From IMG/VR virus record IMGVR_UViG_3300028840_006257, positions 124,001-188,000 of that record: DNA of 64,000 nt. One strand, written 5' to 3'. Positions 600 through 60,469 of the stretch are shown here, one piece after another (position 1 is the first letter of the stretch; each line of letters starts with the position of its first letter). The notes under the pieces were generated by a model that did no database searches, had not been told where the DNA came from, and was given only the letters and a program-made list of their open reading frames with translations. A program made the translations under genes and the position numbers.

Positions 600-3500
600 A
601 TGAGCGTCCTCGGATACGGACTTGAGCCCTTCGGCATGGGCCCCTACGGGGGGCTCGGCGGGGTCATGCTTCCGGCCATGGTGCCTCCTCTAGGAGGCTA
701 CGGAGGCTACGCCTACGGGACGAGCTCGTACGGGTCGCTCGGCAGCTTCGGATCGCCTGCCATCGGGACCACGAGCGGCTTCGGCGGCTGCGGCTACGGG
801 ATCAACTCCTACGGCTGCATCGGCATGCTCACGATGCCGCCCATGGTCATCTCGGCCGTGTCGATCACGGGGTTCATCATCGAGGTGTTCTTCTCGAACG
901 AGATGTCGCCCGACGCCGACCTGTTCGACCCGGCAAGCTACACTCTGACCGACCTGGCCGGGGCGGCTCCGGCGACGGTCCTGAGCGTGCAGTCGGGCGT
1001 CCCCGGCGTGTGGGGACCTACCTCGGTGCTCCTGCACCACACGGGGACGACGCTGGGCGGCCTCTATCGCGTGACCGTGGTCGGCCCGCGCGACGTCTCC
1101 GGAGTTGAAATCGCCGCGTACGCGCCGCTCAACGAGGCCGACTGCCTCTGCAAGGGGGAGCCGCCGCCCTTCACGATCACGCCCACCTCGGGTACGGACC
1201 TGCTCTACGAGTTCGAGCAGGACATGCTGCCCGAGAGCGGGTTCACCCCCGGGATCCTCCAGACCGACGCCTACGACTACGAGACCGACTATCCCCAGAA
1301 CCTGATCCCGGTCGCCGTGGACCATCCGTTCGGCGGGAACCCGAAGCACGTGGAGGTGGAGGTCGTCGGGATGACGGCCGCCGAGTACCTCGGGATCGTG
1401 AGCTCCGCGACGGCCATCGACTACGACGGGACCTACCTGCCCGACGACCCCCAGGCGGACTTCACGGGGCAGCAGGTCGGCACCGGCACGACCACCCAGG
1501 GCACAGACGAGGTGCTGCTCTCGAGCGCGGTGGGGTTCTCCTACGGCTGGCGGTTCCTCGACACGTCGGGGCGCGTGCTGCCGAACTCGAGCTACCGCGT
1601 GGACGTCACCTTCGACGCGTCGGCCGCCGTCCTCCTCGATCCGGCCCCCGGGGTCGACCCGGTCGTGCTCGTGCTGATCAACGACGGCGCCGTGCAGGTC
1701 GAGCTGTCGTTCAAGCGCGTGGTGGGGGTGGATACCCTCGAGGTCGCCTCGGGCGCGTTCGTGGCCTCGTCGAGCATCGGCTGGACGGCCCAGGAGACAA
1801 CCGTCTCGCTCGCGCGTAACCAGAAGGCGGACACCTATACGGTGGTCGTCAACGGGGAACCCATCGTGGCGGGCCCCACCGCGAGCTTCACGGCGCCCCC
1901 GGGATTCCCCGCCGGCGTCCAGTTCATGGTCGATCCGAACGGGACGTACGAGGTCGTCGACCTCCCGCTCAAGGCGCTCCTGTTCACGGCGACCCAGACC
2001 GTGTTCTCCGCCGCGTGGAACTTCCTGCACAACCAGCAGGCTCCCTTCGTGGGGTCGGGCGCCCTCACCAGGGACTCGCTCCTGACCAGGAAGGGGCCGC
2101 TCGTCAAGGGGTGGGGCGATGCGACTCCGGCCACCAAGCAGGACGTCGTCGTCTACGTCAACGGGACGCCCGTGGAGGTCGACTCGGTCAACCCCTACTA
2201 CGGGCGCATCTTCCCTACCATCCCGATTCCCCTGACGCCTCCGGGGACGATGGAGGTCACGGTCGACTACATCTGGTTCCCTGCGCCGGTGATGGCGATG
2301 GCTGGGCTCAACACGCCGGGCCTCGTGCTGAACAAGTACGACTGCGGGCCGATCACCCCGACCGGCGGCAACTCTCCGGGCGTGGGACTCCCGGGAGGAG
2401 GCACCAACGGCGTGGAGCTCTCCCGCTTCCCGATGGCGGTCGTTCTCGGGCCGCGGGCCATGAGGCAGCCGCTGCTACGGAGCCCGAGGTTCGTCGCCTA
2501 CCAGAAGCCGTACACGGCGGCGCTGAACAGTCCGACCACCCTGCTCCTGAACCGGGACCCGCACCAGGTCGCGCTCTCCAGCGAGCACAGGGACGCCGAG
2601 GGCGTCGTCGTGTTCTACGAGGGGACCGAGGGGCCCACGGTCGCCGACCCGCCGTGGACGCTCGTGGGCACGGAGGGGCTCGACGACGCGGACATCGCGG
2701 GCCCCGATCCCGTAAACCCCTCGAACGTGGATCCCGACTCCACCCTCGACGGGGTGTTTCAGGTCTACAAGACTGTCAGCGGCCCCTACGGTGAGGGCGA
2801 CGTCACCTTCTACACGCAGGAGATCGACACGAGTTTCCCGTCCTCCATCGTGATGGTCGTGCGCTTCCAGGTGCTCCCCTCGGAGACCGAGGACGGCGAT
2901 GCCATCCCGATTCCCGACGGCGTCTTCGTCGGAGTAGGTTTTGGCTGCCACACGAACAACCACCTCTACCTGGTCGGCTGTCTCCGCGTCAACGACCTGC
3001 AGCACGTCGGGATGCTGGTGGACCCGTCCTTCCCCGAGCTGCTCGACTCGTGGCAGGTAGCCTACGCGACGGACGTCGAGGTGCTCGACGCCACGACGTG
3101 CCAGGCCCAGAGCGACGAGCTCCCCCAGCTCGTCAGGGAGCGCCTGATCTCCGATGACCTGGTGCGTTTCCAGATCTTCGCGGGAACGCAGACCGGAGTC
3201 TACGAGGTGGTCGAGATCGTCGACCAGACGGACGGCACCAGCACGATCACCCTCTCTCCGACGACGCCGTTTCCCGCTGATCCGGCCCTGTACGGCAACC
3301 GCGACTTCACGGTCTACTTCGAGTCCAGGTGGGACGGCGACGGAGAGCCCGGCAGGCCCGCGACGTACCGTCTGGTCGTGAAGAACGACGTCAAGCTGGT
3401 GCCCGACGGCCTCGCCGAATTGTACCTCGGCGCTTCGTTCTCCGGGCGCGCCCTCGAGCTGGCGGGCGCACCTCCGTTCGCCATCCCGCCCGACGGCGTC

Positions 3501-6116
3501 CTGCTGTACCCTACCGGGAACGAGGGCGAGGTCTTCTGGGGTTCGCTCGACCGCAGGGCGAGCAACCTGAGCAGCTGGTCCTTCGTCAGGTACGCGCTGG
3601 ATCCCGGCGCCACGACCCTGAACTTCCGGCAGATCGTCGTCGCGGCCGAGATGAACGACCTGCCCGAGGACGATCCGAACAATATCTGGTTCCTGACGCA
3701 GGAGTTCGGGTCGCGGATCATCGACTTCACGGGCGACCAACTGCTCCTCAAGGCCACCTCAGCCAACAACCAGGCGGGCGTCGAGGACCAGGACCTGACG
3801 ATAGGCTACGCGAGGGTAGAGCCGTTCCTGACGCGGCGTCTCGCCATCGACATGGATAGCACGTTCCAGGTGGACAGCGGCGTCCTCGGAGCGGGGGACC
3901 TCCTCTACGTGGTGCAGGACGGCCTGAGGGAGGTGCGCCTCGCGACCCTGCTCTACGAGGAGACCGGGACGGAACGCCAGCTCCTCGACCTGCCGAACCT
4001 CTCGCTCTCCGGGCTCCTCCTCCCGGACGAGCAGGGATGGTCGAGGGGCGGCGAGCTCACGACGGAGCGCGTTCAGGGTCAGAGGCTCCAGTTCGTCCAG
4101 GCGACGGGCGAGACGCTCGTGTACGCGCTCGTGCTCGTCGAGACGGGAGGAGATCCTCCGCCCGGCGACGGGCGCGTCATCGAGTCGAGGATCCGCGTCG
4201 CCAGCGTGACCACGACGGACCCGGCCGGAGACACCGGGATCTTCTTCGGCTCCGACGTGGGGCCCATCGGGTCTGCTAGGGGCGTCGGCCTCCAGCTCCG
4301 CGCGGCGACGGGCGGCGTCGCGGACCAGGTGTTCCTGTTCTCTCTCGAGACGGGACTCGAGGTCGCGGCGTTCGACGTGGGCTGGAACGACGGAGAACTT
4401 CACACCTATCGAGTCATCGCGGACGCGGACGTCTCCACCGTGTCCGTGGTGGTGGACGACGTGGTGCTGGGCACGGCCGACCTGACGCTGTTCGCCTCCT
4501 CGTCCACGGACACCGAGGCGACGCTCGGCTTCGCGAACACGCTCACGGCCTGCTTCGTCGAGGTCGAGGACTACTCGGTCGTGGTGCTGCCGCCGAGCAC
4601 GGCGGGACGCACGCTAGGCGTCTACGTCCGGGGGGACTCCGACGACATCGACAGCTGGAGGATTCCGCGGACGGACTTGCTCGACGTGCCGAACTCCGAC
4701 CTCTCCGCCGTGGTCGAGCAGATGGACTGGCGGCAGCGGGTCCGCGTCCGTATCCACCGAGACCCGGGCTGGGGCGTGACGATCCTGCGACCGGACCTCC
4801 CGCCGCCGCCCTACTTCACGGGAGACTTCGCGACGCAGTTCACGGAGCCGAGCGCGGGCTGGATCAACGTCGAGTACCGCGAGCTGCCGCGCGCGCCCTC
4901 CAACGCCGCCCTCGGCCAGGTCTCCTTCGGTGCCCTCGATCCGCGGTCGATCACTCAGCTCCGCATCGACGAGGTCCGGTACCGGATCTACAGGTACGCC
5001 ACCGAGGACATCATCATGCCCCCGCACATGGTGCTGAACCAGCAGAACGTCGTCTCGAGCGGGGAGTTTCACGAAGACATCACGGTCGAGCACATCACCG
5101 TTACCTCGACCGACGCGAGGACGGTCGACCTCAAGGGGGGCAACGTCACGGCCGACCGGGTCTTCCAGCTCGTCTCGCTGAACGAGGACGGTACCACGAC
5201 GACCTACCTGCCGGGGTCCTTCGAGTTCGACCGTGACGCCCAGGTCGTTACCATCACGTCCACGCAGTTCCTGGGTTCGGCCTTCGCCGCCGACGACCAG
5301 CTCGACGAGGACCCGGACGTGGTCGACGACGGCTTCCCGCACGAGGACCTGGTCGCGCCCGCGTCTCCGGTCGACGGCATCTCGGACCCGGATCGACGCG
5401 TCGACGCGCTCAACCCGATCAAGATCCCGGTGACGGTCTCGTTCGCTCCGGGGAGGCCCATCACGAAGACCTACGTGTGCTCGCAGCCACTCCTCGACGG
5501 GACGACCCTGCTCAACCAGGACACCCCGCCGTTCGAGACCTCTCAGGTCGGGACCGACGTGCGGTTCCTGGCCTGGGGTTCGCGGATCAACGACCCGAAC
5601 GACGTGCTCAACACCGACCCCGACTTCATCCTGAACGACCCGTTCCGGTTCATCGACTTCAGCAGCGACCCGAAGATCCAGTACGAGCAGATCGATTTCT
5701 GCGAGGTCTCGGAGGGCGAGGAGAACCGTCTGTCCCCGTTCTGCGACGGCGGCTATCCGGGGGCGGCGGACGCGGGCCATCCGGGCAACGATCCGGGCGA
5801 CATCGGCAACGGACCTGTCGAGATCGGCCTCGAGGGTATCGCCTTCACGGAGACCGAACCCATCAGTTTCAATGACGGTCCGTCGGACGGCTTCGGGGGT
5901 TTCACGAGCACCACCTTCCTCAAGGCCAGCGGGGGCGACGCCCCGCCCGGGGGCAACCTCGGAGAGGCCATCCTCTTCACGCCCCTGGGGCCCGAGACGG
6001 TCACTCCGGAGAGCCTCGACGGTAGCGTGGGTTGGAGCGTGATGGGGCAGCTCTACGACACGACCACGAACACCCTCACCCTCCTGTTTTTCGGCACTGA
6101 GTCGCTTGGTCCTTAG
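600..6116 (+). CDS. Giant (1838 aa) putative virion tail/baseplate protein with Ig-like and lectin-like beta modules
   Basis: Long ORF with GC3-rich codons. N-terminal G[YF]GxxxYG repeats, an Ig-like stretch (IIEVFFSNEM...DPASYTL) and a LamG-like strand (LHTYRVIAD...VSVVVDD). Function inferred from size and context. Confidence 0.55.
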   Translation: MSVLGYGLEPFGMGPYGGLGGVMLPAMVPPLGGYGGYAYGTSSYGSLGSFGSPAIGTTSGFGGCGYGINSYGCIGMLTMPPMVISAVSITGFIIEVFFSNEMSPDADLFDPASYTLTDLAGAAPATVLSVQSGVPGVWGPTSVLLHHTGTTLGGLYRVTVVGPRDVSGVEIAAYAPLNEADCLCKGEPPPFTITPTSGTDLLYEFEQDMLPESGFTPGILQTDAYDYETDYPQNLIPVAVDHPFGGNPKHVEVEVVGMTAAEYLGIVSSATAIDYDGTYLPDDPQADFTGQQVGTGTTTQGTDEVLLSSAVGFSYGWRFLDTSGRVLPNSSYRVDVTFDASAAVLLDPAPGVDPVVLVLINDGAVQVELSFKRVVGVDTLEVASGAFVASSSIGWTAQETTVSLARNQKADTYTVVVNGEPIVAGPTASFTAPPGFPAGVQFMVDPNGTYEVVDLPLKALLFTATQTVFSAAWNFLHNQQAPFVGSGALTRDSLLTRKGPLVKGWGDATPATKQDVVVYVNGTPVEVDSVNPYYGRIFPTIPIPLTPPGTMEVTVDYIWFPAPVMAMAGLNTPGLVLNKYDCGPITPTGGNSPGVGLPGGGTNGVELSRFPMAVVLGPRAMRQPLLRSPRFVAYQKPYTAALNSPTTLLLNRDPHQVALSSEHRDAEGVVVFYEGTEGPTVADPPWTLVGTEGLDDADIAGPDPVNPSNVDPDSTLDGVFQVYKTVSGPYGEGDVTFYTQEIDTSFPSSIVMVVRFQVLPSETEDGDAIPIPDGVFVGVGFGCHTNNHLYLVGCLRVNDLQHVGMLVDPSFPELLDSWQVAYATDVEVLDATTCQAQSDELPQLVRERLISDDLVRFQIFAGTQTGVYEVVEIVDQTDGTSTITLSPTTPFPADPALYGNRDFTVYFESRWDGDGEPGRPATYRLVVKNDVKLVPDGLAELYLGASFSGRALELAGAPPFAIPPDGVLLYPTGNEGEVFWGSLDRRASNLSSWSFVRYALDPGATTLNFRQIVVAAEMNDLPEDDPNNIWFLTQEFGSRIIDFTGDQLLLKATSANNQAGVEDQDLTIGYARVEPFLTRRLAIDMDSTFQVDSGVLGAGDLLYVVQDGLREVRLATLLYEETGTERQLLDLPNLSLSGLLLPDEQGWSRGGELTTERVQGQRLQFVQATGETLVYALVLVETGGDPPPGDGRVIESRIRVASVTTTDPAGDTGIFFGSDVGPIGSARGVGLQLRAATGGVADQVFLFSLETGLEVAAFDVGWNDGELHTYRVIADADVSTVSVVVDDVVLGTADLTLFASSSTDTEATLGFANTLTACFVEVEDYSVVVLPPSTAGRTLGVYVRGDSDDIDSWRIPRTDLLDVPNSDLSAVVEQMDWRQRVRVRIHRDPGWGVTILRPDLPPPPYFTGDFATQFTEPSAGWINVEYRELPRAPSNAALGQVSFGALDPRSITQLRIDEVRYRIYRYATEDIIMPPHMVLNQQNVVSSGEFHEDITVEHITVTSTDARTVDLKGGNVTADRVFQLVSLNEDGTTTTYLPGSFEFDRDAQVVTITSTQFLGSAFAADDQLDEDPDVVDDGFPHEDLVAPASPVDGISDPDRRVDALNPIKIPVTVSFAPGRPITKTYVCSQPLLDGTTLLNQDTPPFETSQVGTDVRFLAWGSRINDPNDVLNTDPDFILNDPFRFIDFSSDPKIQYEQIDFCEVSEGEENRLSPFCDGGYPGAADAGHPGNDPGDIGNGPVEIGLEGIAFTETEPISFNDGPSDGFGGFTSTTFLKASGGDAPPGGNLGEAILFTPLGPETVTPESLDGSVGWSVMGQLYDTTTNTLTLLFFGTESLGP

Positions 6117-6157
6117 CGGTTTTCGTTCTATCAGACGGCGCCTAGCAGGGAGATCTC

Positions 6158-6349
6158 ATGCCCACCATCATCCGTGAAAATCTCAGGCCAGCCCGCTCCG
6201 GCTACAAGTTCGGACTGGTGCAACGCTGCACGGATGTCGTCCCCCTCGCGATGACGCGGGGACGCGTGTTCATCGAGATGCGGGATGCCCGCACGGGTGA
6301 CGTCGAAGAACGGTATTGGCTGGACGACCTCAAGGAGTCTGATGTCTGA
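6158..6349 (+). pseudogene. Orphan N-terminal fragment of the tail/baseplate gene completed at 7441-8040
   Basis: 63-aa ORF with SD-like GGGAG. RGRVFIEMRDARTGDVEERYW aligns with KGEFFLTMTDVRTGEVQIQW of the 7441 ORF; the ORF ends where the endonuclease begins. Confidence 0.6.
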
Positions 6350-7460
6350 AGTCTCGCAAGCGGAGCTGAGGCGTCGCCAAAAAATCTCAGACGCCTTGAA
6401 GGGACGCAAGAAGGGACCGCGCAAGCGCGTTTCCGAGGAGGCTAGGAAGGCCCATTCCGAAATGATGAAGGTTCGATGGGCCGACATGTCCGACGAAAAA
6501 CGAGCCTGCATTGGACAACGGATCTCGGAATCCCTGAGCGGTAAAAAGCATACCGTGGAGCATCGAAAGGCAAATGCCGAGAGTCGGCGAGGCAAACCCC
6601 TCTCTCAAGAACAACGGAAGAAGATCTCACGGTCTCTCTGTGAAGCCTACGAGGAAGGACGACGCTCCTCGTGGAACACTGGAATGCGTGTGGGGTCTTG
6701 TTCTGAGGAGACCAAGAAAAAGATCTCTGATTCCCTTCGACGGGCGAGTCAGGAAGGACGTCTGACCCGCTGTCCTTGGAATCAAGGAAAACGGACGGGC
6801 CCGCGTCCGAAAGAGGTTCGTCGGAAGATCTCCGAAAGTTTGCGTGGGAGATCTCATTCGGTCTCACCTGAAAAGCGCGAGGCTTGGCGTCAGAAGATTT
6901 CCACAACTAAGCGAGGGGCGCGTCGTTCCGCGGAAGCCTGTCAAAAAACCTCCGAGTCTTTGCGGCGGGCATACGCGGAGGGTCGTCGCGGGATTTCCGT
7001 GAAGTCGGGCTATGGAAAGGGGAGTTACTACGATACGCCGTTCCAAGGCAAGAAATGGTTGCGATCTACTTCTGAAGTTCAGCGCGCACGCGAGTTGGAC
7101 CAGGCCGGCATCATCTGGTTCTACGAGTTACGCAAGTTCGTCGTGGAACTGAAGGGTCACAACTCCACGTACACTCCGGATTTCTGGATTGTCGAAGACC
7201 TCAAAAGAGAGGCCGTATCCTCAGCACCGTCCCTGGAGGACTTCATCAACGAGATGGAGACCTCGGGGCGTTTTCGGATCGAGGATGTGAAAGGCTGGTG
7301 GGGGCCCACACATAAAACCTTCAAGAAGATCAGCGCGTTTCAGGAGCAGTATCCGAGAGTGCCTTTCCGTATCGTGGTCCGAGAAGGTCTGTTCAGAGAG
7401 AGGGCAACACCCGGCATGCGCTGGAAAGAAGAGGAGCAACATGCAGGACAGAGCGTCTGA
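6342..7460 (+). mobile_element. Free-standing homing endonuclease: NUMOD3-type repeats plus C-terminal PD-(D/E)XK nuclease domain
   Basis: Start refined to ATG 6342 (AAGGAG at 6332-6337). Repeated K(K/R)IS(E/D)SL(K/R)G and PWNxG motifs; C-terminal RSTSE...IWFYE...YTPDF...EDVKG. Visibly lower GC than the flanks. Confidence 0.8.
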
Positions 7461-40112: not shown

Positions 40113-42671
40113 ATGCGCATCGTGACGATGACGCGCAAGCCGTGCTCAGGTGGCAGCGCGACGAACAACGTCATCGGGCACCAGGCGGGAGCGCTGAACA
40201 TCGACGGCTGCCGCGTCGGGTACCTGTCCACGCGAGATTTTCGGGAGACGGTTAGCCGCAATCCGGGCACAGATCGCCGATTCGTCTCGAACCTGTACGA
40301 CACACAGAGCAAGACGAGGCCGATGCAGAGAGTGGACACGTCGGGAAGGTGGCCCGCGAACGTCGTGCTCGTCCACCGCCCAGAGTGTCATCATGTCGGC
40401 GCCGTCGCCGGACCTGGCTACACGATCAACCGCTGGACCGACGGGGCCAAGCCCTTCGGGGGCGGTGCGGGCCACGAGTACGAGAGCAAAGAACGGTCCG
40501 AGGAGCGCATCCCCGTCTGGGATTGCGTGGATTCCTGCGCTGTGGGGAAAATGGACGAACAGAGCGGGGTTTCTCGAAGCGGTGCCATGAGGCGGTACGT
40601 CGGCGCCTACGAGGGCGACTCCGTAACGGGATTTCTCCGTGGAAATTCAGGGCCGCACAACCAGAGGGATGATGTGGGAACCGCGGCCCGCTTTTTCAAG
40701 CAGGTGCAGAGCGAGGAGGACGCCATGAGCAACGTCCCACGGGAACTCTGGGACTACCTCTACACGATGATCGCGCCGCCACTCAGCTGCGAACCCATCA
40801 TCATCATGGACGCCGACCTGGCGGCCCTCGACCTCTCGCAGTTCGAGGACTCCTCCGTCCACGGCATGATCACGGTCGGGAACCCGGAGCTCTACATGAA
40901 GGAGATCGACCGGGTGCTCAAGCCAGGGGCACACCTTCTCCTGATCGCCCCCGACACTGAGCCGACGGGACACACGGGAGCCTGTGCCGTGGAGGACTTC
41001 GGCTACGAGATACGCGATGCCATCGCCCTCCTGGATGCTCCCGCCGAGTTCCACTACGTCGCGAAGGCGAGCACGAGCGAGCGCAACGCGGGCGTCCCCG
41101 AGTTCAGGCGCACGGTCGAGGTCGCGCGGCTGTTCCCGGCGGACGGCGTGGACGTCGAGGACCTCGCGGAGGACATGGCCGAACACCTCGAGGAGGAGCA
41201 GGCGCGCACGTGGCTTGAGGAGGGGCTGCCTCCGCACGCGGTGCCCGAAGATTTGAAGGACAAGTTCGTGGAGCGCAAGGTCAGCGTCGAGAAGGTGCGC
41301 CGCAACGATCACCCTTGTTTGCATCCTGATGACTTAGTGATGACCGCGAGGGGGTACCGGCCGTTGACGGAGGTTCAAACGGGGGATCTCGTATACTCGC
41401 AGGACGGTAGGTTCCACGTTATCGAGGAGGTCACCCGTCATCCGTATGCAGGCCCCTGTCTTTACGAGATCAGGGTGATCGGAACTAACTACACGACGAG
41501 AGCGAGCAACAACCACCCTTTCCTGGTCTGGCGGCCCGTGCGCGAGAGACGGTACATCCTGGGGGGGCACGTTCTGTGGCTTGATGCGGCAGATGTCCAA
41601 CGAGGGGATTACACGATGACTCCGATCATGGAGGACGAGCCTCTTGGAGACGGGCGCTCGGAGGAGTTGGCGGCACGAGCCGACGACGAAGAGTTCTGGT
41701 TCATGTTTGGTCTCTACCTGGCCGAAGGTTCAATCCATACTGCCGGGCCCGGGAAAGCCGCCTATCCGTCCTATGGATTGGGCGACCATGAGGACGATTT
41801 GCATCTGCGGATTGACGAGTACTTCGCACATGTCAAAGTCGGAATCTATGAGAAGGAATCGGGTACCGCCGTCGCAATCATTCCTTTTGATGCTGAGGCA
41901 GGACGAATTTTCCTCTGGCTCGGGGGAAAGGGAGCCGCGACTAAGAGTCTTCGTCCTGAGTTCTGGAGTCTCTCTCGGAGCGCACGAGAGGCAGTTTACG
42001 AGGGTTACATGGCCGGAGACGGAGGAGACGTCAGGAATCACAGGCAGTGCAAAACAGTATCGCAGGACCTCGCCTCTCAGATGTGGCTTCTTTCCGAGGG
42101 ACTGGGCTACAAGGCCAATCTGTTCCGGTACCCCGGAACGCCAGGTGGGATTGGAGATCGCGTCTTCAAGAGTGTAAGCCCTGAGCATCAGATGCACTTT
42201 TATAGTCGGAATCAGGCGCTCCAAAGGCGACAGCCTTCCAGGCCCACGCATCTTGAGCATGAAGGTCGACGGTATCTTCTGCGCTACGTCAAGGAAGTCC
42301 GAGAAGTCCCCTACGAGGGAGACGTGATGAACCTCAGCGTGGAGGGGTCTCCGACTTTCATGACACCTGTCGGGATGACCCACAACACCTGCAAACCCGT
42401 CGGCGTGATGGAACGGCTCCTCGCCGACGTCCCCAAGGACGCCCTCGTGGTCGATCCGTTCGTGGGTTCGGGCACGACCGGCATCGCGTGTCTCAGGACG
42501 GGACATGACTTCGTCGGCATCGAGCAGGACGCCGAGTACCTGAAGATCGCGGACCAGCGAATCCGGTACTGGGATCGAGCGGAGGCCGCGTGGCAGAACG
42601 CTGAGATCGAGAGCGAGGCCGAGCTCGAGGAGGACGAGCCGATGACTCTTGAGGACCTGTTCGGAGGCTAG
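40113..42671 (+). CDS. DNA methyltransferase C-terminal part (variable region, decayed catalytic region, motifs X-I-II-III) with intein
   Basis: Begins MRIVTMTRKP...GALNIDGCRV...GRWPAN...AARFF; RVLKPGAHLL...EDFGYEIRD present but DPPY absent; HP|TCKP; VDPFVGSGTTG; GIEQDAEY. Confidence 0.8.
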   Translation: MRIVTMTRKPCSGGSATNNVIGHQAGALNIDGCRVGYLSTRDFRETVSRNPGTDRRFVSNLYDTQSKTRPMQRVDTSGRWPANVVLVHRPECHHVGAVAGPGYTINRWTDGAKPFGGGAGHEYESKERSEERIPVWDCVDSCAVGKMDEQSGVSRSGAMRRYVGAYEGDSVTGFLRGNSGPHNQRDDVGTAARFFKQVQSEEDAMSNVPRELWDYLYTMIAPPLSCEPIIIMDADLAALDLSQFEDSSVHGMITVGNPELYMKEIDRVLKPGAHLLLIAPDTEPTGHTGACAVEDFGYEIRDAIALLDAPAEFHYVAKASTSERNAGVPEFRRTVEVARLFPADGVDVEDLAEDMAEHLEEEQARTWLEEGLPPHAVPEDLKDKFVERKVSVEKVRRNDHPCLHPDDLVMTARGYRPLTEVQTGDLVYSQDGRFHVIEEVTRHPYAGPCLYEIRVIGTNYTTRASNNHPFLVWRPVRERRYILGGHVLWLDAADVQRGDYTMTPIMEDEPLGDGRSEELAARADDEEFWFMFGLYLAEGSIHTAGPGKAAYPSYGLGDHEDDLHLRIDEYFAHVKVGIYEKESGTAVAIIPFDAEAGRIFLWLGGKGAATKSLRPEFWSLSRSAREAVYEGYMAGDGGDVRNHRQCKTVSQDLASQMWLLSEGLGYKANLFRYPGTPGGIGDRVFKSVSPEHQMHFYSRNQALQRRQPSRPTHLEHEGRRYLLRYVKEVREVPYEGDVMNLSVEGSPTFMTPVGMTHNTCKPVGVMERLLADVPKDALVVDPFVGSGTTGIACLRTGHDFVGIEQDAEYLKIADQRIRYWDRAEAAWQNAEIESEAELEEDEPMTLEDLFGG
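41316..42386 (+). mobile_element. Intein (357 aa, LAGLIDADG) in methyltransferase motif X
   Basis: Starts CLHPDD, ends GMTHN, +1 Thr; FGLYLAEGS and YEGYMAGDG motifs. Confidence 0.9.
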
Positions 42672-48651: not shown

Positions 48652-51600
48652 GTGAACCTGAGTTTCCTGGACAGCCTTGAGGAGGCGACTAGGCCCGACG
48701 TGGAACGCCGCGCCTGGATCGACGACGTGCACCTGGAGCTCGTGACCGAGAAGACGCTGGACGGCGTCGTGGACGACTGCATCGCGTCGGGGCGTTTCGG
48801 TTGTGACCTGGAGACCACAGGTCTCGACAACCGGGTGTTCGACGGACGCACCAAGGACCAGATCGTCGGCTACTGCCTCAGCCCGGACGTGAAGCGGGGT
48901 TACTACATCCCCGTCCGGCACCGGAAGGGAGAGCAGCACAACCTCCCGATCCAGCGGGTCGAGACGGCCATCCGTCGCCTGGTGAGCTCCGAGGCCGTGG
49001 CAATCTTCCACCATGCGAAGTTCGACCAGGAGTTCCTCCAGTTCTGCGACCTCGGCCTCTGGGACGAGCCGCGCCAGTTCGACGACACGATGATCCTGGC
49101 GTACCTGTGGAACGCCAGGAACAAGCAGAAGGGCCTGAAGTACCTGGTCAGGACCCTCCTCGGCGTCGACATGATCGAGCTGGACGAGCTGTTTCCGGGC
49201 GATCACAAGGGCGCCAAGGACTTCTCCGAGCTCGACCCGTCGTGGGACCCCTGCGTCTGGTACGCGGCGGCGGACCCGCTGTTCACCTACCGGCTGTACG
49301 AGCACCTTCATCCCCTCGTGGCCGCGCCGGACGGGGACCGCGGGAGGGGGCAGGAGGTCGTCTACAACCTCGAGAAGATGTGCCTGCCGGCGACGCGCTG
49401 GATGGAGCGGTGCCGGGTCTACATTGACCAGGACAGGGTGACCGAGTTGATGCAGCTCGGACAGCAGGAGTACTTCGACTCGATGCGGGAGATCTACGAC
49501 TTCTCCAACGAGTCTCTCGGGCGGCGCATCGAACCAGGGTGGTTCAGGCTGCTGCGCGAGAAGTTCGTCGCGGACAATCCCGACTACAACATCAACCAGC
49601 AGATCCACGACTGTCGGCTCGAGGCGAAGAGGAAGGGGTTCGACGACCTGGACGGCAAGGGGCACTACTTCAAGACCGAGAAGGGGTGGCCCGAGCGCTG
49701 CGACGTGTTGAGTCGAGAGCAGCTCGGTCCCCTGTTCGAGGAACTCCAGATACCGGACCTGCGCAAGACGGAGAAGAAGGAGCAGGTTCAGACGACGCAG
49801 GCCGAGATCGCGCGCCTCGAGGAGCAGCATGGCGAGAAGTACCCGTTCCTGCCCAAGATCAAGCGCCTCGGCGAGCTGCAGAAGGCCCTGGGGACCTACC
49901 TCATCTCGCTCCGCAACGACGTGGGCCCCGACGGGACCCTGAAGATCGACTACAACCAGTGCGGGACGGACACGGGTCGCTTCACGACTCCCTCGTCGCA
50001 GAATCCTGCGTCCGACGGCGGGACGAAGTTCCCTATGCACGGGACCCCGGCCACCTACGACAAGTCGCGTCCTCAGTGTCTCCTGCGAGCTCGCGAGTGC
50101 GTCAAGGCGCGGCCCGGCAAGGCGATGGTCGCGTGCGATTTCGGTGGGGTCGAACTCAGGATCGCCACCATCCTGTCGGGCGAGCCCCTGTGGCTCCGCG
50201 AGTTCTTCCGGTGCAGCACGTGCGGCCAGACGTTTGACCGCGGCGACGGCAAGAGCACGCCGCCGGCTCCTCCGGCCTACTGTCCCAAGTGCGGGGACGA
50301 CCGTATTGGAGACCTGCACACCCTGACCGGCATCACCTTCTTCGGCGAGGACAAGGTCGGCACGAAGGAGTGGAAGCAGCTGCGGAACCGAGCGAAGAGC
50401 GCCAACTTCAGCATGGCGTACGGAGGGGGGCCCTCCTCCATAGTCCGCACCATCAAGTGCGACGAGCAGGAGGCCTCGCGGCACCATCTGGCCTTCAACC
50501 GAACCTACTCGACGCTGAAGGCGTGGTGGGACAGCGTAAAGGCGTTCGGCCGCGCGCACGGATACGTCAAGACGGCCTTCGGGCGCCACTACCCTATCCC
50601 CGACATCCAGCTGCCGACGAACGCCCGCGGCGTGCAGAAGCAACTCGCGGAGCAGTACAAGGCGAGGGTCGCGGCCGGGAAGAAGGCGACGCCGCCTGAC
50701 GAAGCGGCCATCCGGCGCCAGATGGACTGGAACCGAAAGTTCCGAGCGAAGGCCGAGCGCAACGCGACCAACGGACCGATCCAGGGCTGTCTTCACGCGG
50801 ACTGTCGGATTCCGACGTCTCTTGGGACTTGTCGGATCCAGGACCTCTGGGAACTCCGTGAACGAGGAGTTAGTAGATTCAAGGTATGGACCGGGCGAAA
50901 CTGGGAGGCCGCGTGCGCCCTCTACTCAGGATTGAAGGAGCTCGTCGTCACGGAGTTCGAATCGGGACAGACCATCAGGACGAGCCCCGAACACCTGTTT
51001 CGCGTGTATCGGGAGGGGGCGTTCGGCTGGGTTCGGCAGGACGAGCTCACGCCGGACATGTGGGTGGCGACGAATTCAATGCCCGTGATCTCAGAGGGAG
51101 AACCCGTTTACTCGTACGACTCGACGACGTTCGACCTAGAGGGGGACCCGGTCAAGATTCCGAATTTTCCCCACAATCGAAAGCCGTTCGTCTTCAAAGG
51201 AAATTCCCCAATCTTGTGGGAGTTTCTCGGAATGGTTTACGGAGACGGGACCATCCAGACGGATTACTTGCTGGTCCACGTCGGGGAGGCGCCGAAGCAC
51301 CTTACGACCGACTTCTCCGCCGAGCGGCTTGCTCGCGAATGCGCGGAGGAACTCAACGACGCGCTGGAAATTGGAGCCATAGCCCGGAAAAGATGTCGAA
51401 GGGAGGGCGACGCTCGGCGCCCTACCTGGCAGATCAAGGTCCACAATAAGTCGTTTCGCGACTTTTGCCGGATCGTGTTGGGCGTCGAAGATCAGAACAC
51501 CTGGACCAAGCGGTTCCCCCGCGCCGTGTGGTCGGAGAGCTACGAGAACCGCAACGCTTTCCTTCGGGGGTATTTTTCGGCCGACGGTGGCATCAACTGC

Positions 51601-52920
51601 GAAAGCGTGATCGATGTCCGGAGCGTGAACGAGGGTCTTCTGCGAGACGCGCACCAGCTGCTTCGCTCGGTCGGCATTCGTTCCACTCTCCGGCTGGCCT
51701 CTCAACGGGTGTCCGTCAAGGATCGACGAGCTTTTCGGGATCGAGTGGGATTCCTTCATTCCTACAAGCGCGACCGCATGGCCGCCATGACCGAGAATCC
51801 GTACTTCGATCAGTGGCACCTCTGTCCTCCAGATCTCGTTGGACGAGTGGGTCAGTGCGTTCGAGAGTCCTCGCTGTGGCTGACCCTGACCAAGGACGAG
51901 AAGTCCGCCGTCTACCGGCTGATGAAGGGTTCGGGAAGCAAGTCACAGTGTCTTCGTTTTCTCAACCGAGTGAAGGGCGCCGAGGTTCCGCAGAGCCTGC
52001 GGGACGCCCTAGTATACGACTTCGAGCGCATCGTCGATTCTGAGCATACTGGAGAAATCGTCGAGATGTATGATGTCGAGGTGTTCGACGACGAGCACGC
52101 GTTCGTGGCCGACGGTTACGTCGTCCACAACACCTCGGCGGACATCACGAAGCTGGCGATGGCCCTGATCTACAAGGAGTGCAAGAAGCGGGACTGGCTC
52201 GACAAGGTCTACATGATCATCACGATTCACGACGAGCTCGTGTTCGAGATCGATCTCGACATCCTCGCGGAGGCCGTCGAGGTGTTCCAGGAGATCATGA
52301 CCCGGAACAGGACGATCACGAAGATGTGCTGGTCCGTGCCCCTCACCACCGACTGCGAGATCGGGTTCGACTGGACCGTCCCGTACGACGTGAAGGACTT
52401 CAAGTACCGTCGGGTGCGGCCCGACGGCGTCCAGGTCAACGAGAAGGGGGAGCCGACCAAGAAGGTGTGGCCCGAGGAGTTCGTGAAACTCTTCGGTCCG
52501 GTGTACGGGTTTGCCGGGGACGCGGAGGCTCCTCCGGCCCCGGCTTTCAAGCCCCTTCCCGCACCGCCCGCGGAGGCGCCCCAGAAGGCCCAGGAGGCGC
52601 CCGCACCCGTCGAGGCCCCGTCGCTCCCGGAACGCGTCGTCGAGGCTCCCGAGCGCTCTGAGACGCCCTCGACGCCTCTCCCGGCGCCGACCCTCCCGTC
52701 GGCGCCCCTGGAACGTGGTCAGGTCTATGAGTACCGGCTGCGCGCCCTCGGGGTCGGCGTCGCGGACCGCCTGGCGCGCGCCATCGTACAGTGCCACGGT
52801 CGGGGGTCGCACCCGCTGCGCGTCGTCGGTCCGACGGGCGAGGAGGCCCTATGGGCCGGCGCGGAGATTCTGGTAAACCCCATTGAGTTCGAGACCGTCG
52901 CCGGCATGTACGGAATCTGA
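48652..52920 (+). CDS. polA: Family A DNA polymerase (3'-5' exo plus pol, no 5' exo) with intein (~974 aa spliced)
   Basis: Exo motifs CDLETTG, HAKFD and YAAAD; pol motif A CDFGGVELR, motif B RNRAKSANFSMAYG (Phe at the 762-equivalent position), motif C IHDEL. Confidence 0.93.
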   Translation: MNLSFLDSLEEATRPDVERRAWIDDVHLELVTEKTLDGVVDDCIASGRFGCDLETTGLDNRVFDGRTKDQIVGYCLSPDVKRGYYIPVRHRKGEQHNLPIQRVETAIRRLVSSEAVAIFHHAKFDQEFLQFCDLGLWDEPRQFDDTMILAYLWNARNKQKGLKYLVRTLLGVDMIELDELFPGDHKGAKDFSELDPSWDPCVWYAAADPLFTYRLYEHLHPLVAAPDGDRGRGQEVVYNLEKMCLPATRWMERCRVYIDQDRVTELMQLGQQEYFDSMREIYDFSNESLGRRIEPGWFRLLREKFVADNPDYNINQQIHDCRLEAKRKGFDDLDGKGHYFKTEKGWPERCDVLSREQLGPLFEELQIPDLRKTEKKEQVQTTQAEIARLEEQHGEKYPFLPKIKRLGELQKALGTYLISLRNDVGPDGTLKIDYNQCGTDTGRFTTPSSQNPASDGGTKFPMHGTPATYDKSRPQCLLRARECVKARPGKAMVACDFGGVELRIATILSGEPLWLREFFRCSTCGQTFDRGDGKSTPPAPPAYCPKCGDDRIGDLHTLTGITFFGEDKVGTKEWKQLRNRAKSANFSMAYGGGPSSIVRTIKCDEQEASRHHLAFNRTYSTLKAWWDSVKAFGRAHGYVKTAFGRHYPIPDIQLPTNARGVQKQLAEQYKARVAAGKKATPPDEAAIRRQMDWNRKFRAKAERNATNGPIQGCLHADCRIPTSLGTCRIQDLWELRERGVSRFKVWTGRNWEAACALYSGLKELVVTEFESGQTIRTSPEHLFRVYREGAFGWVRQDELTPDMWVATNSMPVISEGEPVYSYDSTTFDLEGDPVKIPNFPHNRKPFVFKGNSPILWEFLGMVYGDGTIQTDYLLVHVGEAPKHLTTDFSAERLARECAEELNDALEIGAIARKRCRREGDARRPTWQIKVHNKSFRDFCRIVLGVEDQNTWTKRFPRAVWSESYENRNAFLRGYFSADGGINCESVIDVRSVNEGLLRDAHQLLRSVGIRSTLRLASQRVSVKDRRAFRDRVGFLHSYKRDRMAAMTENPYFDQWHLCPPDLVGRVGQCVRESSLWLTLTKDEKSAVYRLMKGSGSKSQCLRFLNRVKGAEVPQSLRDALVYDFERIVDSEHTGEIVEMYDVEVFDDEHAFVADGYVVHNTSADITKLAMALIYKECKKRDWLDKVYMIITIHDELVFEIDLDILAEAVEVFQEIMTRNRTITKMCWSVPLTTDCEIGFDWTVPYDVKDFKYRRVRPDGVQVNEKGEPTKKVWPEEFVKLFGPVYGFAGDAEAPPAPAFKPLPAPPAEAPQKAQEAPAPVEAPSLPERVVEAPERSETPSTPLPAPTLPSAPLERGQVYEYRLRALGVGVADRLARAIVQCHGRGSHPLRVVGPTGEEALWAGAEILVNPIEFETVAGMYGI
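50788..52131 (+). mobile_element. Intein (448 aa, LAGLIDADG) in PolA at IQG|TSAD
   Basis: Starts CLHADC, ends YVVHN, +1 Thr; FLGMVYGDG and FLRGYFSADG motifs. Confidence 0.92.
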
Positions 52921-59020: not shown

Positions 59021-59702
59021 TCACCACAGGCGCCGGAGATCTCCCTTCTGGTATGCCTCCCAAGTGGTGCGTTTTCGGGTGCGATGGTCCACGACCTGGT
59101 TGCGTTGGACGGCGATCGTCCGTCGTTTGTCCCCACGCGCTCCACGACCCACCTGGGCCTTCCTGTCGGCGTTCCGCCCCCGCGTCTCCCTAGCGTCGAT
59201 CTTGGCCTTGAGACGCGCCCTCAGGACGGCCAGGGCCGTTTGACGGTTGACGTGCTGGCTGCGACCGCCGTCGATCCTCACGGTGATGTCCGAGGGGCGG
59301 TGCGACAAGACCACGCAGCTGTCGGTCTTGTTCCGATGCTGGCCTCCCTTTCCGCTCCCGCGCGTGAACGACTCCTCGAGGTCGCGAGGGTCGATGTGGA
59401 GCTCGTGCTCCTCAGGCTCAGGAAGGACGGCGATCGTCACCGTCGACGTGTGGACGCGTCCGCGCTTCTCGGTCGGAGGGACCCGTTGGAATCTGTGACC
59501 CCCGGCCTCATGGCGGAACGCCGCCACGGCCCCACGTCCTGCGACGCGCATCAGGAGGAAGCCGGGTCTCGCCTCGAGGATCTCGTGGTCAAAGACCCTC
59601 CTGGGCCATGAACTTCTCGTACACCCGGTACTGGACGCGCACGAGGTCCTTGGAGTCGTCGCCGCCCTCGGCAGCCCTGATTTCCACGATCACTCGTTCC
59701 AT
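59021..59702 (-). CDS. RF1-type peptide chain release factor lacking domain 1, expressed via +1 programmed frameshift (~226 aa)
   Basis: Frame 0 (ATG 59702): MERVIVEIRAAEGGDDSKDLVRVQYRVYEKFMAQEGL-TGA. The +1 frame continues DHEILEARPGFLLMRVAG...EAGGHRFQRVPPTEKRGRVHTST...GSGKGGQHRNKTDS. Both parts align with RF1 domains 2-4. Confidence 0.88.
59588..59602 (-). promoter_or_regulatory. prfB-like +1 frameshift cassette AGGAGG-GT-CTT-TGA-C
   Basis: Internal SD at 59602-59597, CTT at 59594-59592, TGA at 59591-59589, C at 59588; the +1 frame joins the downstream RF ORF exactly. Confidence 0.88.
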
Positions 59703-59782: not shown

Positions 59783-60203
59783 CTAGAGGAATCCTGGAAA
59801 CGAACCCTGAAACTCGTAGTCCGATGCAAGCCTGATTCGCTTAGCCTGTTTGTTGCGGGAGGGTGCGACACGCAGAGAAGCTTTCCTTGTTCCAACATGT
59901 TCGACCGGTACTAAGTACACGGCATCCAACTCTGGTGAGTACACGGCAAAAAACTCGATTTCTTCTCGGTAGGCTCTCGTCTCGCCCGTGTTCCAGTTGT
60001 TGGAACATGTCGAAAAATTGAGGGCTCCTTTGAAGACCTTGCCGGTCTTGCACTGAATACGAACGAAACGACCATCCTGATCCACGACCAAATCGTACCT
60101 CTGTGAGTCTCCGAAGGGAGTCAGAACAACCAACCCTGCCCGCAAAAAATCTAGCAATCATTTGCGCTTCAGACCGTTCTCCGATCTCCTTTGGGGTTGC
60201 CAT
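59783..60203 (-). pseudogene. I-Ssp6803I-like (group I intron-type) PD-(D/E)XK endonuclease broken by one extra T in a T6 run
   Basis: Frame A gives MATPKEIGERSEAQMIARF and frame B gives FLRAGLVVLTPFGDSQRYDLVVD...RIQCKT. Removing one T at 60144-60149 joins them. Low GC. Confidence 0.8.
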
Positions 60204-60238: not shown

Positions 60239-60331
60239 TGGCGAGCGAGGAGGGATTTGAACCCCCGATGGGACTTGCGTCCTCTGGATTAAAAGTCCAG
60301 TGCGTTCGGCCAGGCTACGCGTAACTCGCCC
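60239..60331 (-). tRNA. tRNA-Lys(UUU), atypical: long variable arm, 4-nt acceptor-D linker, G73, encoded CCA
   Basis: GGGCGAG/CTCGCTC acceptor; GCGT/ACGC D stem; CTGGA-CTTTTAA-TCCAG anticodon arm; GGAC-GCAA-GTCC variable arm; GGGGG-TTCAAAT-CCCTC T arm. Confidence 0.88.
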
Positions 60332-60396
60332 ACAACTGATGGAGCAGGGCGCCGCGCGTTTGAGTCTGTGGTGTGTAACCGACATCGTCTTCTCGG

Positions 60397-60469
60397 TGAG
60401 CCGGGTGGGTCACGATCCCACGGCCTGCGGGTTAAGAGTCCGCCGCTCTGCCTACTGAGCTACCGGCCC
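60397..60469 (-). tRNA. tRNA-Lys(CUU), CCA not encoded, atypical T loop
   Basis: GGGCCGG/CCGGCTC acceptor, A73 then CCG; GCTC/GAGC D stem; GCGGA-CTCTTAA-CCCGC; GTGGG-ATCGTGA-CCCAC. Confidence 0.88.

Follow-up and report, generated by a model that had tools for sequence, protein, structure and literature searches.

Organization of the mini release factor locus

Analysis of a 64,000-nucleotide stretch of a 213-kb IMG/VR contig (record IMGVR_UViG_3300028840_006257, positions 124,001 to 188,000; hereafter ‘the window’) identified a minus-strand gene for a shortened RF1-type release factor that is split between two reading frames. An ATG at 59702 opens a 37-codon ORF ending in ...CAG GAG GGT CTT TGA C, after which the +1 frame, entered at GAC 59590-59588, stays open for 189 codons. 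The features of the locus are as follows.

59592..59702, minus strand: ORF1 (frame 0), 37 codons from Met to the slippery Leu, encoding the start of release factor domain 2, including the E-I-R-A-A-E-G-G-D-D helix tip
59597..59602, minus strand: internal Shine-Dalgarno (SD)-like AGGAGG, with its GGAG core (59601-59598) 3 nt before CTT
59592..59594, minus strand: slippery P-site codon CTT (Leu)
59589..59591, minus strand: gate stop codon TGA, followed by C at 59588 (a weak UGA-C context)
59024..59590, minus strand: ORF2 (+1 frame), 189 codons, encoding the rest of domain 2, the GGQ domain 3 and domain 4, with its stop at 59023-59021
59471..59479, minus strand: tripeptide ‘anticodon’ P-P-T within the loop Q-R-V-P-P-T-E-K-R-G-R-V-H-T-S
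59339..59347, minus strand: catalytic GGQ motif (S-G-K-G-G-Q-H-R-N)
59783..60157, minus strand: PD-(D/E)XK endonuclease gene (Pfam PF11645, E 7e-33) between the tRNAs and the mini release factor gene
60243..60330, minus strand: second tRNA, with anticodon loop C-T-T-T-T-A-A (Lys-TTT) and a long extra arm, found by Rfam at 38.9 bits and missed by ARAGORN
60395..60469, minus strand: tRNA-Lys(CTT), upstream on the same strand

Profile searches show that the two pieces are successive parts of one release factor. ORF1 matches NCBIfam RF1/RF2 profile positions about 105-138 and Pfam PCRF positions 101-134, while ORF2 matches RF1 profile positions 158-318, PCRF at 155-194 and the whole RF-1 (GGQ) domain. 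A +1 shift at CTT_T therefore gives a 226-aa protein with the junction ...QEGL|DHEIL.... No part of domain 1 is encoded, as the ORF starts four codons before the E-I-R-A-A-E-G-G motif. A conventional ORF list of the window reports only a 176-aa product (59551-59021), which is the part after an internal ATG at 59551. A preliminary description had proposed a release factor without domain 1 and with an RF1-type decoding loop, split by a prfB-type SD/CUU/UGA/C site, and this anatomy is fully supported.

The window uses the standard genetic code, with an ORF density of 0.95 and TGA as the main stop (TGA 28, TAG 9 and TAA 6 among 43 selected ORFs). It carries a DNA polymerase, helicases, NAD ligase, GroEL, several N6/N4 methylases, a PAPS-reductase-like gene and homing-endonuclease signatures, which fits the replication region of the contig. 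The tRNA-Lys(CTT) gene is part of a conserved tRNA-Lys plus mini release factor module. In the relatives L002, L003, L004 and L167 (phage loci recovered in our searches), tRNA-Lys genes also lie on the same strand upstream of the gene, from about 75 nt away in L002 to 2.4 kb away in L004, and long tRNA-Lys(TTT) genes were called in L002, L004 and L167. More distant members sit in large tRNA arrays; one lies near a tmRNA gene, and one has tRNA-Trp(CCA) just upstream of an in-frame UGA gene. A promoter and terminator scan around the gene gave nothing informative.

Conservation of the frameshift cassette

Taken alone, the motif is weak evidence for recoding. GGAGNNNCTTTGA occurs once in the window against 0.14 expected, with 13 of 100 shuffles containing at least one match, and CTTTGAC occurs at the chance rate. 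The case against chance rests instead on the position of the motif, exactly at the frame junction of a split gene, and on its conservation in homologs. We scanned viral contigs, metagenome contigs and species-representative genomes with ORF2, and in every close relative the same cassette sits at the same junction. A curated collection of phages, whose records are unannotated, gave no relative above 60% identity. Among 38 distinct aligned frameshift sites, spanning GC contents of 0.28 to 0.76 and down to about 40% protein identity, the slippery codon is CTT in all 38. The bases at -10 to -7 are G, G, A and G in 95%, 89%, 84% and 89% of sites respectively, the three-base spacer is free, and the base after the stop is C in 79%. 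Three further sites inspected individually fit the same pattern, bringing the total to 41 distinct sites with an invariant CTT.

The cassette is also present in cultured bacteria. Five Nannocystis species carry CGGGAGCACCTTTGAC (with CGC or CAT in place of CAC in two species, and G after the stop in one) in large, mostly megabase-scale contigs, including those of N. exedens DSM 71 and the complete N. punicea FL3 chromosome. In Nannocystis the gene lies in a 12.5-kb chromosomal locus that is syntenic at 85-93% between species, next to a ClpB-like ATPase and a hemerythrin gene and with no tRNAs. The arrangement is therefore not a phage-only circuit. A sixth assembly (N. pusilla, locus L181) shows typical homopolymer deletions and was disregarded.

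These comparisons make an assembly error or a decaying pseudogene very unlikely. A single-base frame break in a metagenomic contig could in principle be either, and the other contig with this sequence (L087) is 100% identical over 6.5 kb and so is not an independent check. However, the same break with the same cassette occurs in dozens of divergent contigs and in isolate genomes, and the one assembly with real homopolymer errors (L181) looks different. Uncorrected pN/pS is below 1 for ORF1 in frame 0 and for ORF2 in frame +1, to a similar degree; for ORF1, it is 0.16-0.64 in the eight pairs with the window copy and up to 0.93 in one other pair.

It is likewise unlikely that only ORF2 is made, from ATG 59551 or another internal start, with ORF1 as a separate small peptide or an upstream leader. 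Gene callers do favor such products, as 119 of the 120 closest database proteins are ORF2-only calls of 168-218 aa. The Met at 59551 is nevertheless not conserved, being absent in L003 and in Nannocystis, whereas the ORF1 start is conserved 2-5 codons before E-I-R in relatives. ORF1 carries the conserved helix-tip motif, is under purifying selection in its own frame and is colinear with RF1. In RF1 this tip (G-G-x-D) probably reads the first base, U, of the stop codon, in which case ORF1 would be needed for codon-specific action. The single in-frame protein among the 120 (P0064), the one ungated member of the window’s clade, has TTG in place of CTT, GAAAGG in place of GGAG, and no stop. It serves as a natural control showing that CTT and the SD-like sequence go with the frame break.

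Diversity of stop-codon gates across the family

We classed 97 distinct members of the family and examined four more individually. Of these 101, 39 have a single in-frame TGA, 31 have a +1 site with CTT-TGA, 9 have CTT-TAG, 2 have CTT-TAA, and 20 are uninterrupted, such that about 80% carry a stop-codon gate at or near the same place. Loci with several in-frame stops that were misfiled by automatic classing (L082-L084, L086, L111 and L141) were left out of these counts, together with L181 and L196, while L085, which is genuinely uninterrupted, was kept. In most of the in-frame TGA class, the stop falls where canonical RF1 appears to have G-W-K (context GG[TC] TGA AAG). In four members it lies four codons after an intact TGG, and its position is thus not fixed.

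One possible explanation for the in-frame TGA is genetic code 4 (TGA = Trp), but this can be rejected. Each of these genes has exactly one TGA, while their other 88 Trp codons are all TGG. No tRNA(UCA) was found in the loci scanned, and ORF density in the low-GC loci does not rise when TGA is read as sense. The TGA is therefore a site-specific gate that must be read through, although code 4 is not excluded for four huge-phage records with one or two TGAs at shifting positions.

A maximum-likelihood tree of the decoding and catalytic parts resolved a readthrough clade (support 100/97) with one CTT-TAG pair nested inside it. A frameshift clade of 28 rows (99/97) holds the window, its phage relatives and the Nannocystaceae genes, with a UAG subclade nested among UGA members. 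The tree also contains an ungated clade of 17, including contigs from Acidimicrobiaceae MAGs, with P-K/R-x loops, and several further frameshift lineages. The window’s protein falls inside this Myxococcota-dominated frameshift clade, which hints at a myxobacterial host, although this is inference only. CTT-stop sites occur at three different positions in the gene. The general rule is a stop-codon gate shortly after the first helix, of which the window’s version is the commonest frameshift form. The gate is therefore not always RF2-specific, and the preliminary reading of a UGA/RF2 sensor needs broadening to gating by termination efficiency.

Relationship to known release factors

The decoding loop and profile scores identify the product as RF1-like. 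Against NCBIfam models, ORF2 scores 180.8 bits with RF1, 116.3 with RF2, 61.1 with PrfH and 35.5 with ArfB; against solved structures in the PDB, it scores 140 bits with RF1, 80 with RF2 and 40 with PrfH. The decoding loop, GGQ and domains 2-4 align over about 160 residues with solved RF1 structures at 1e-35 to 1e-40, and the loop aligns residue for residue with Q-R-V-P-V-T-E-S-G-G-R-I-H-T-S of the RF1 entry 1rq0. The GGQ motif is conserved in nearly all members. Nonetheless, the protein is not a member of the prfA equivalog (NF001859/TIGR00019), as it lacks domain 1 and its scores of 180.8 and 180 are below the cut-offs of 400 and 423. Its tripeptide is PPT, whereas PAT or PVT appears to be usual for RF1. 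NCBIfam has no specific model for the family, and the matching PHROG is of ‘unknown function’.

Like PrfH, a bacterial class-I release factor homolog (PMC1586002), the protein lacks domain 1. However, the PrfH model (TIGR03072) scores 61.1 against a cut-off of 166.65 and only over the GGQ domain, and the neighbors scanned are a PD-(D/E)XK nuclease and a DNA methylase, plus two tRNA genes, with no RtcB among them. The ArfB model (NF006718) scores 35.5 against a cut-off of 100, and PCRF codon-reading parts are present. These results bear on the possibility that the full-length protein does not terminate the phage’s own genes, but competes with host RF1 or acts as a rescue or quality-control factor on stalled or damaged ribosomes, as PrfH and ArfB do, with the gate merely keeping a toxic protein at a low level. 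Overexpression of release factors is toxic (PMC12421855), and the chromosomal Nannocystis copy is unlikely to be the only release factor in those genomes. We consider this reading unlikely, given that the stop-codon-reading elements and GGQ are conserved across the family.

The cassette has the same elements as that of prfB (RF2), with an SD-like sequence, 3-nt spacer, CUU, UGA and C, the same direction of shift, a short abortive ORF1 and a class-I release factor as the gene product. As in prfB, no downstream RNA structure is present (z 0.02). The site lies at codon 38 inside domain 2 (RF1 profile position about 138) rather than at codon 26 of domain 1, the position in E. coli prfB (PMC5009743), and is thus not inherited from prfB. 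Moreover, gate codons in the family include UAG, which was found in none of 8,164 prfB motifs in a survey of more than 12,000 bacterial genomes (PMC12421855). The same survey found no programmed frameshift in prfA and no prfB motif in Actinomycetota, while the ungated members found here include contigs from Actinomycetota MAGs.

The Mimivirus/Megavirus class-I release factor (Jeudy et al. 2012, PMC3521657) is also virus-encoded and requires recoding at internal stops, using both frameshift and readthrough, which are interpreted as regulatory. That factor is of eRF1/aRF1 type, belongs to a eukaryotic giant virus and needs both events in one gene, whereas here the factor is of bacterial RF1 type, and frameshift and readthrough occur as alternatives in different lineages. 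Stop-codon-recoded phages likewise carry class-I release factors among tRNA genes in a translation module (Borges et al., bioRxiv 10.1101/2021.08.26.457843). Those RF1 and RF2 genes are described as standard-code genes in TGA- or TAG-recoded phages, with no mention of frameshifting. We found no prior description of the present family in the literature we could search.

Possible function of the gate

The best-supported reading of the cassette is prfB-type +1 ribosomal frameshifting, in which the rate is set by competition between release at the A-site stop and slippage of peptidyl-tRNA-Leu from CUU to UUU, helped by SD/anti-SD pairing, a mechanism established for prfB and summarized in PMC12421855. 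By this analogy, ribosomes would start at ATG 59702 and after 37 codons reach CUU-UGA-C. If RF2 acts on the UGA, a 37-aa peptide would be released; if UGA decoding is slow, the ribosome would be pushed +1, GAC would be read next, and the full 226-aa factor would be made. Output would therefore rise as termination efficiency at the gate falls, and in this window, where the stop is UGA, the gate would depend on RF2. That the protein is made when RF2 is scarce, as the preliminary description proposed, follows only from analogy with prfB. High-GC hosts rich in RF2 may shift poorly, as the prfB motif gave about 6% in M. smegmatis (PMC12421855).

Judged from its decoding loop, the product likely releases peptides at UAA and UAG. 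Domain 1, which contacts RF3 and the ribosomal stalk, is probably needed for recycling by RF3 but not for peptide release, and if so the factor would work without RF3. Our preferred hypothesis, to which we assign a probability of roughly 0.6, is that the locus of this jumbo phage encodes an auxiliary UAA/UAG release factor, held low unless termination capacity is strained, as it may be late in infection by a large phage. This physiology is inferred, and its adaptive logic is incomplete, since a strictly UAA/UAG-reading product cannot relieve a UGA/RF2 shortage.

A second possible, though less likely, hypothesis is true autoregulation as in prfB, with a mini factor of relaxed or changed specificity that itself reads the gate codon (UGA here), so that its own abundance, and not host RF2 alone, closes a negative feedback loop. 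Every recoding-gated release factor known so far, namely prfB and the Mimivirus factor (PMC3521657), is described as autoregulatory. Closely related members switch between UGA, UAG and UAA gates without any change in the decoding loop, as expected if the product reads all three. No covariation was found between the gate codon (TGA or TAG) and the tripeptide (PPT or PPN). Tripeptide variants in the family are PPT, PPN, PVT and SPT; the third residue varies between T and N and the first is S in two members, which may mean that the specificity is not classical RF1. Under the tripeptide rule of Ito et al. 2000, S-x-T would be expected to read all three stops. On the other hand, the residues around the loop (Q-R-V-P-x-T, H-T-S) match RF1 and not RF2, profile scores favor RF1 by 60 bits or more, and Pro in the first and Thr in the third tripeptide position predict UAA/UAG.

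Taken more broadly, it is somewhat more likely than not that these genes form a previously undescribed family of auxiliary bacterial-type class-I release factors, RF1-like, lacking domain 1 and mostly carrying a P-P-T/N decoding loop, which occur in phages, often inside tRNA arrays, and in Nannocystaceae chromosomes. Their synthesis would be gated by recoding at a stop codon just after the codon-reading helix, in interchangeable forms: +1 frameshifting at CUU-UGA, CUU-UAG or CUU-UAA, or readthrough of a single in-frame UGA. This would be the first programmed frameshift in an RF1-type gene, and the first bacterial-type release factor genes with the in-frame-stop readthrough control that was predicted decades ago. 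[quoted passage not shown] The present family shows these arrangements side by side, in phages and in culturable bacteria, and offers natural comparisons for asking what a stop-codon gate senses. It shows that the SD-CUU-stop cassette arose a second time, at a different place in a different release factor gene, and explains why these genes are systematically mis-annotated as truncated 170-220-aa ‘release factor 1’ fragments. The family would act as a sensor of cellular termination capacity, and it suggests that large phages tune termination, and not only the tRNA supply.

Genomic context of the mini-RF gene in the window and its phage relatives

A second tRNA is found in the window at 60243-60330 on the minus strand, with a Lys-TTT anticodon loop and a long extra arm (88 nt). 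This tRNA was found by Rfam at 38.9 bits but was missed by ARAGORN. Similar long tRNA-Lys(TTT) genes were called in three phage relatives (L002, L004 and L167). L167 (contig JBDHAB010000014.1) is labelled as a Gemmatimonadota MAG, yet this 72-kb contig carries the same module of four tRNA-Lys genes plus a mini-RF gene as the viral contigs L002 and L004, and is probably a phage contig binned into a bacterial MAG.

Elsewhere in the window, the following genes were noted on the plus strand:

600-6116 (+), very long ORF of 1838 aa
12289-15513 (+), very long ORF of 1074 aa
15524-18937 (+), very long ORF of 1137 aa
30221-34369 (+), helicase of 1382 aa
34366-35658 (+), N6/N4 DNA methyltransferase
40113-42671 (+), N6/N4 DNA methyltransferase
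48652-52920 (+), DNA polymerase of 1422 aa
58095-59015 (+), N6/N4 DNA methyltransferase

The three very long ORFs have no PHROG match at 1e-5 and are of unknown function. The helicase has a LAGLIDADG-endonuclease match in its middle, while the DNA polymerase is matched in two separate stretches, and both may carry inteins or inserted homing endonucleases. The three methyltransferase genes lie within 25 kb, and the middle one is fused to a region with a weak match to anaerobic ribonucleotide reductase.

Gates and decoding loops in other members of the family

Among the relatives, one assembly would mislead a frameshift survey. Relative to the other five Nannocystis genomes, the assembly of Nannocystis pusilla Na p29 (L181, 5880-6030) has lost one base from an A run and one from the T run of the shift site, and these losses look like long-read homopolymer errors. 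In the huge-phage records LR745206, LR756504, LR756502 and LR756501 (L082, L083, L084 and L086, respectively), the mini-RF genes of 630-735-kb phages (GC about 0.3) contain one or two in-frame TGAs at shifting positions (codons 39-54). Two readthrough-type members (L130 and L142) have S-P-T instead of P-P-T in their decoding loops, a combination that, if the tripeptide rule applies, would read all three stop codons.

In the relative L006, a phage-borne tmRNA gene and three tRNA-Met genes (3130-3496 and 5372-6612) flank a mini-RF gene, whose gate is CTT-TAG and lies 17 codons further downstream than in the window. In the relatives L025/L026, a tRNA-Trp(CCA) at 5738-5812 lies just upstream of a mini-RF gene whose single in-frame UGA would most naturally be read by near-cognate Trp-tRNA. 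The phage may supply the tRNA that reads through the gate.
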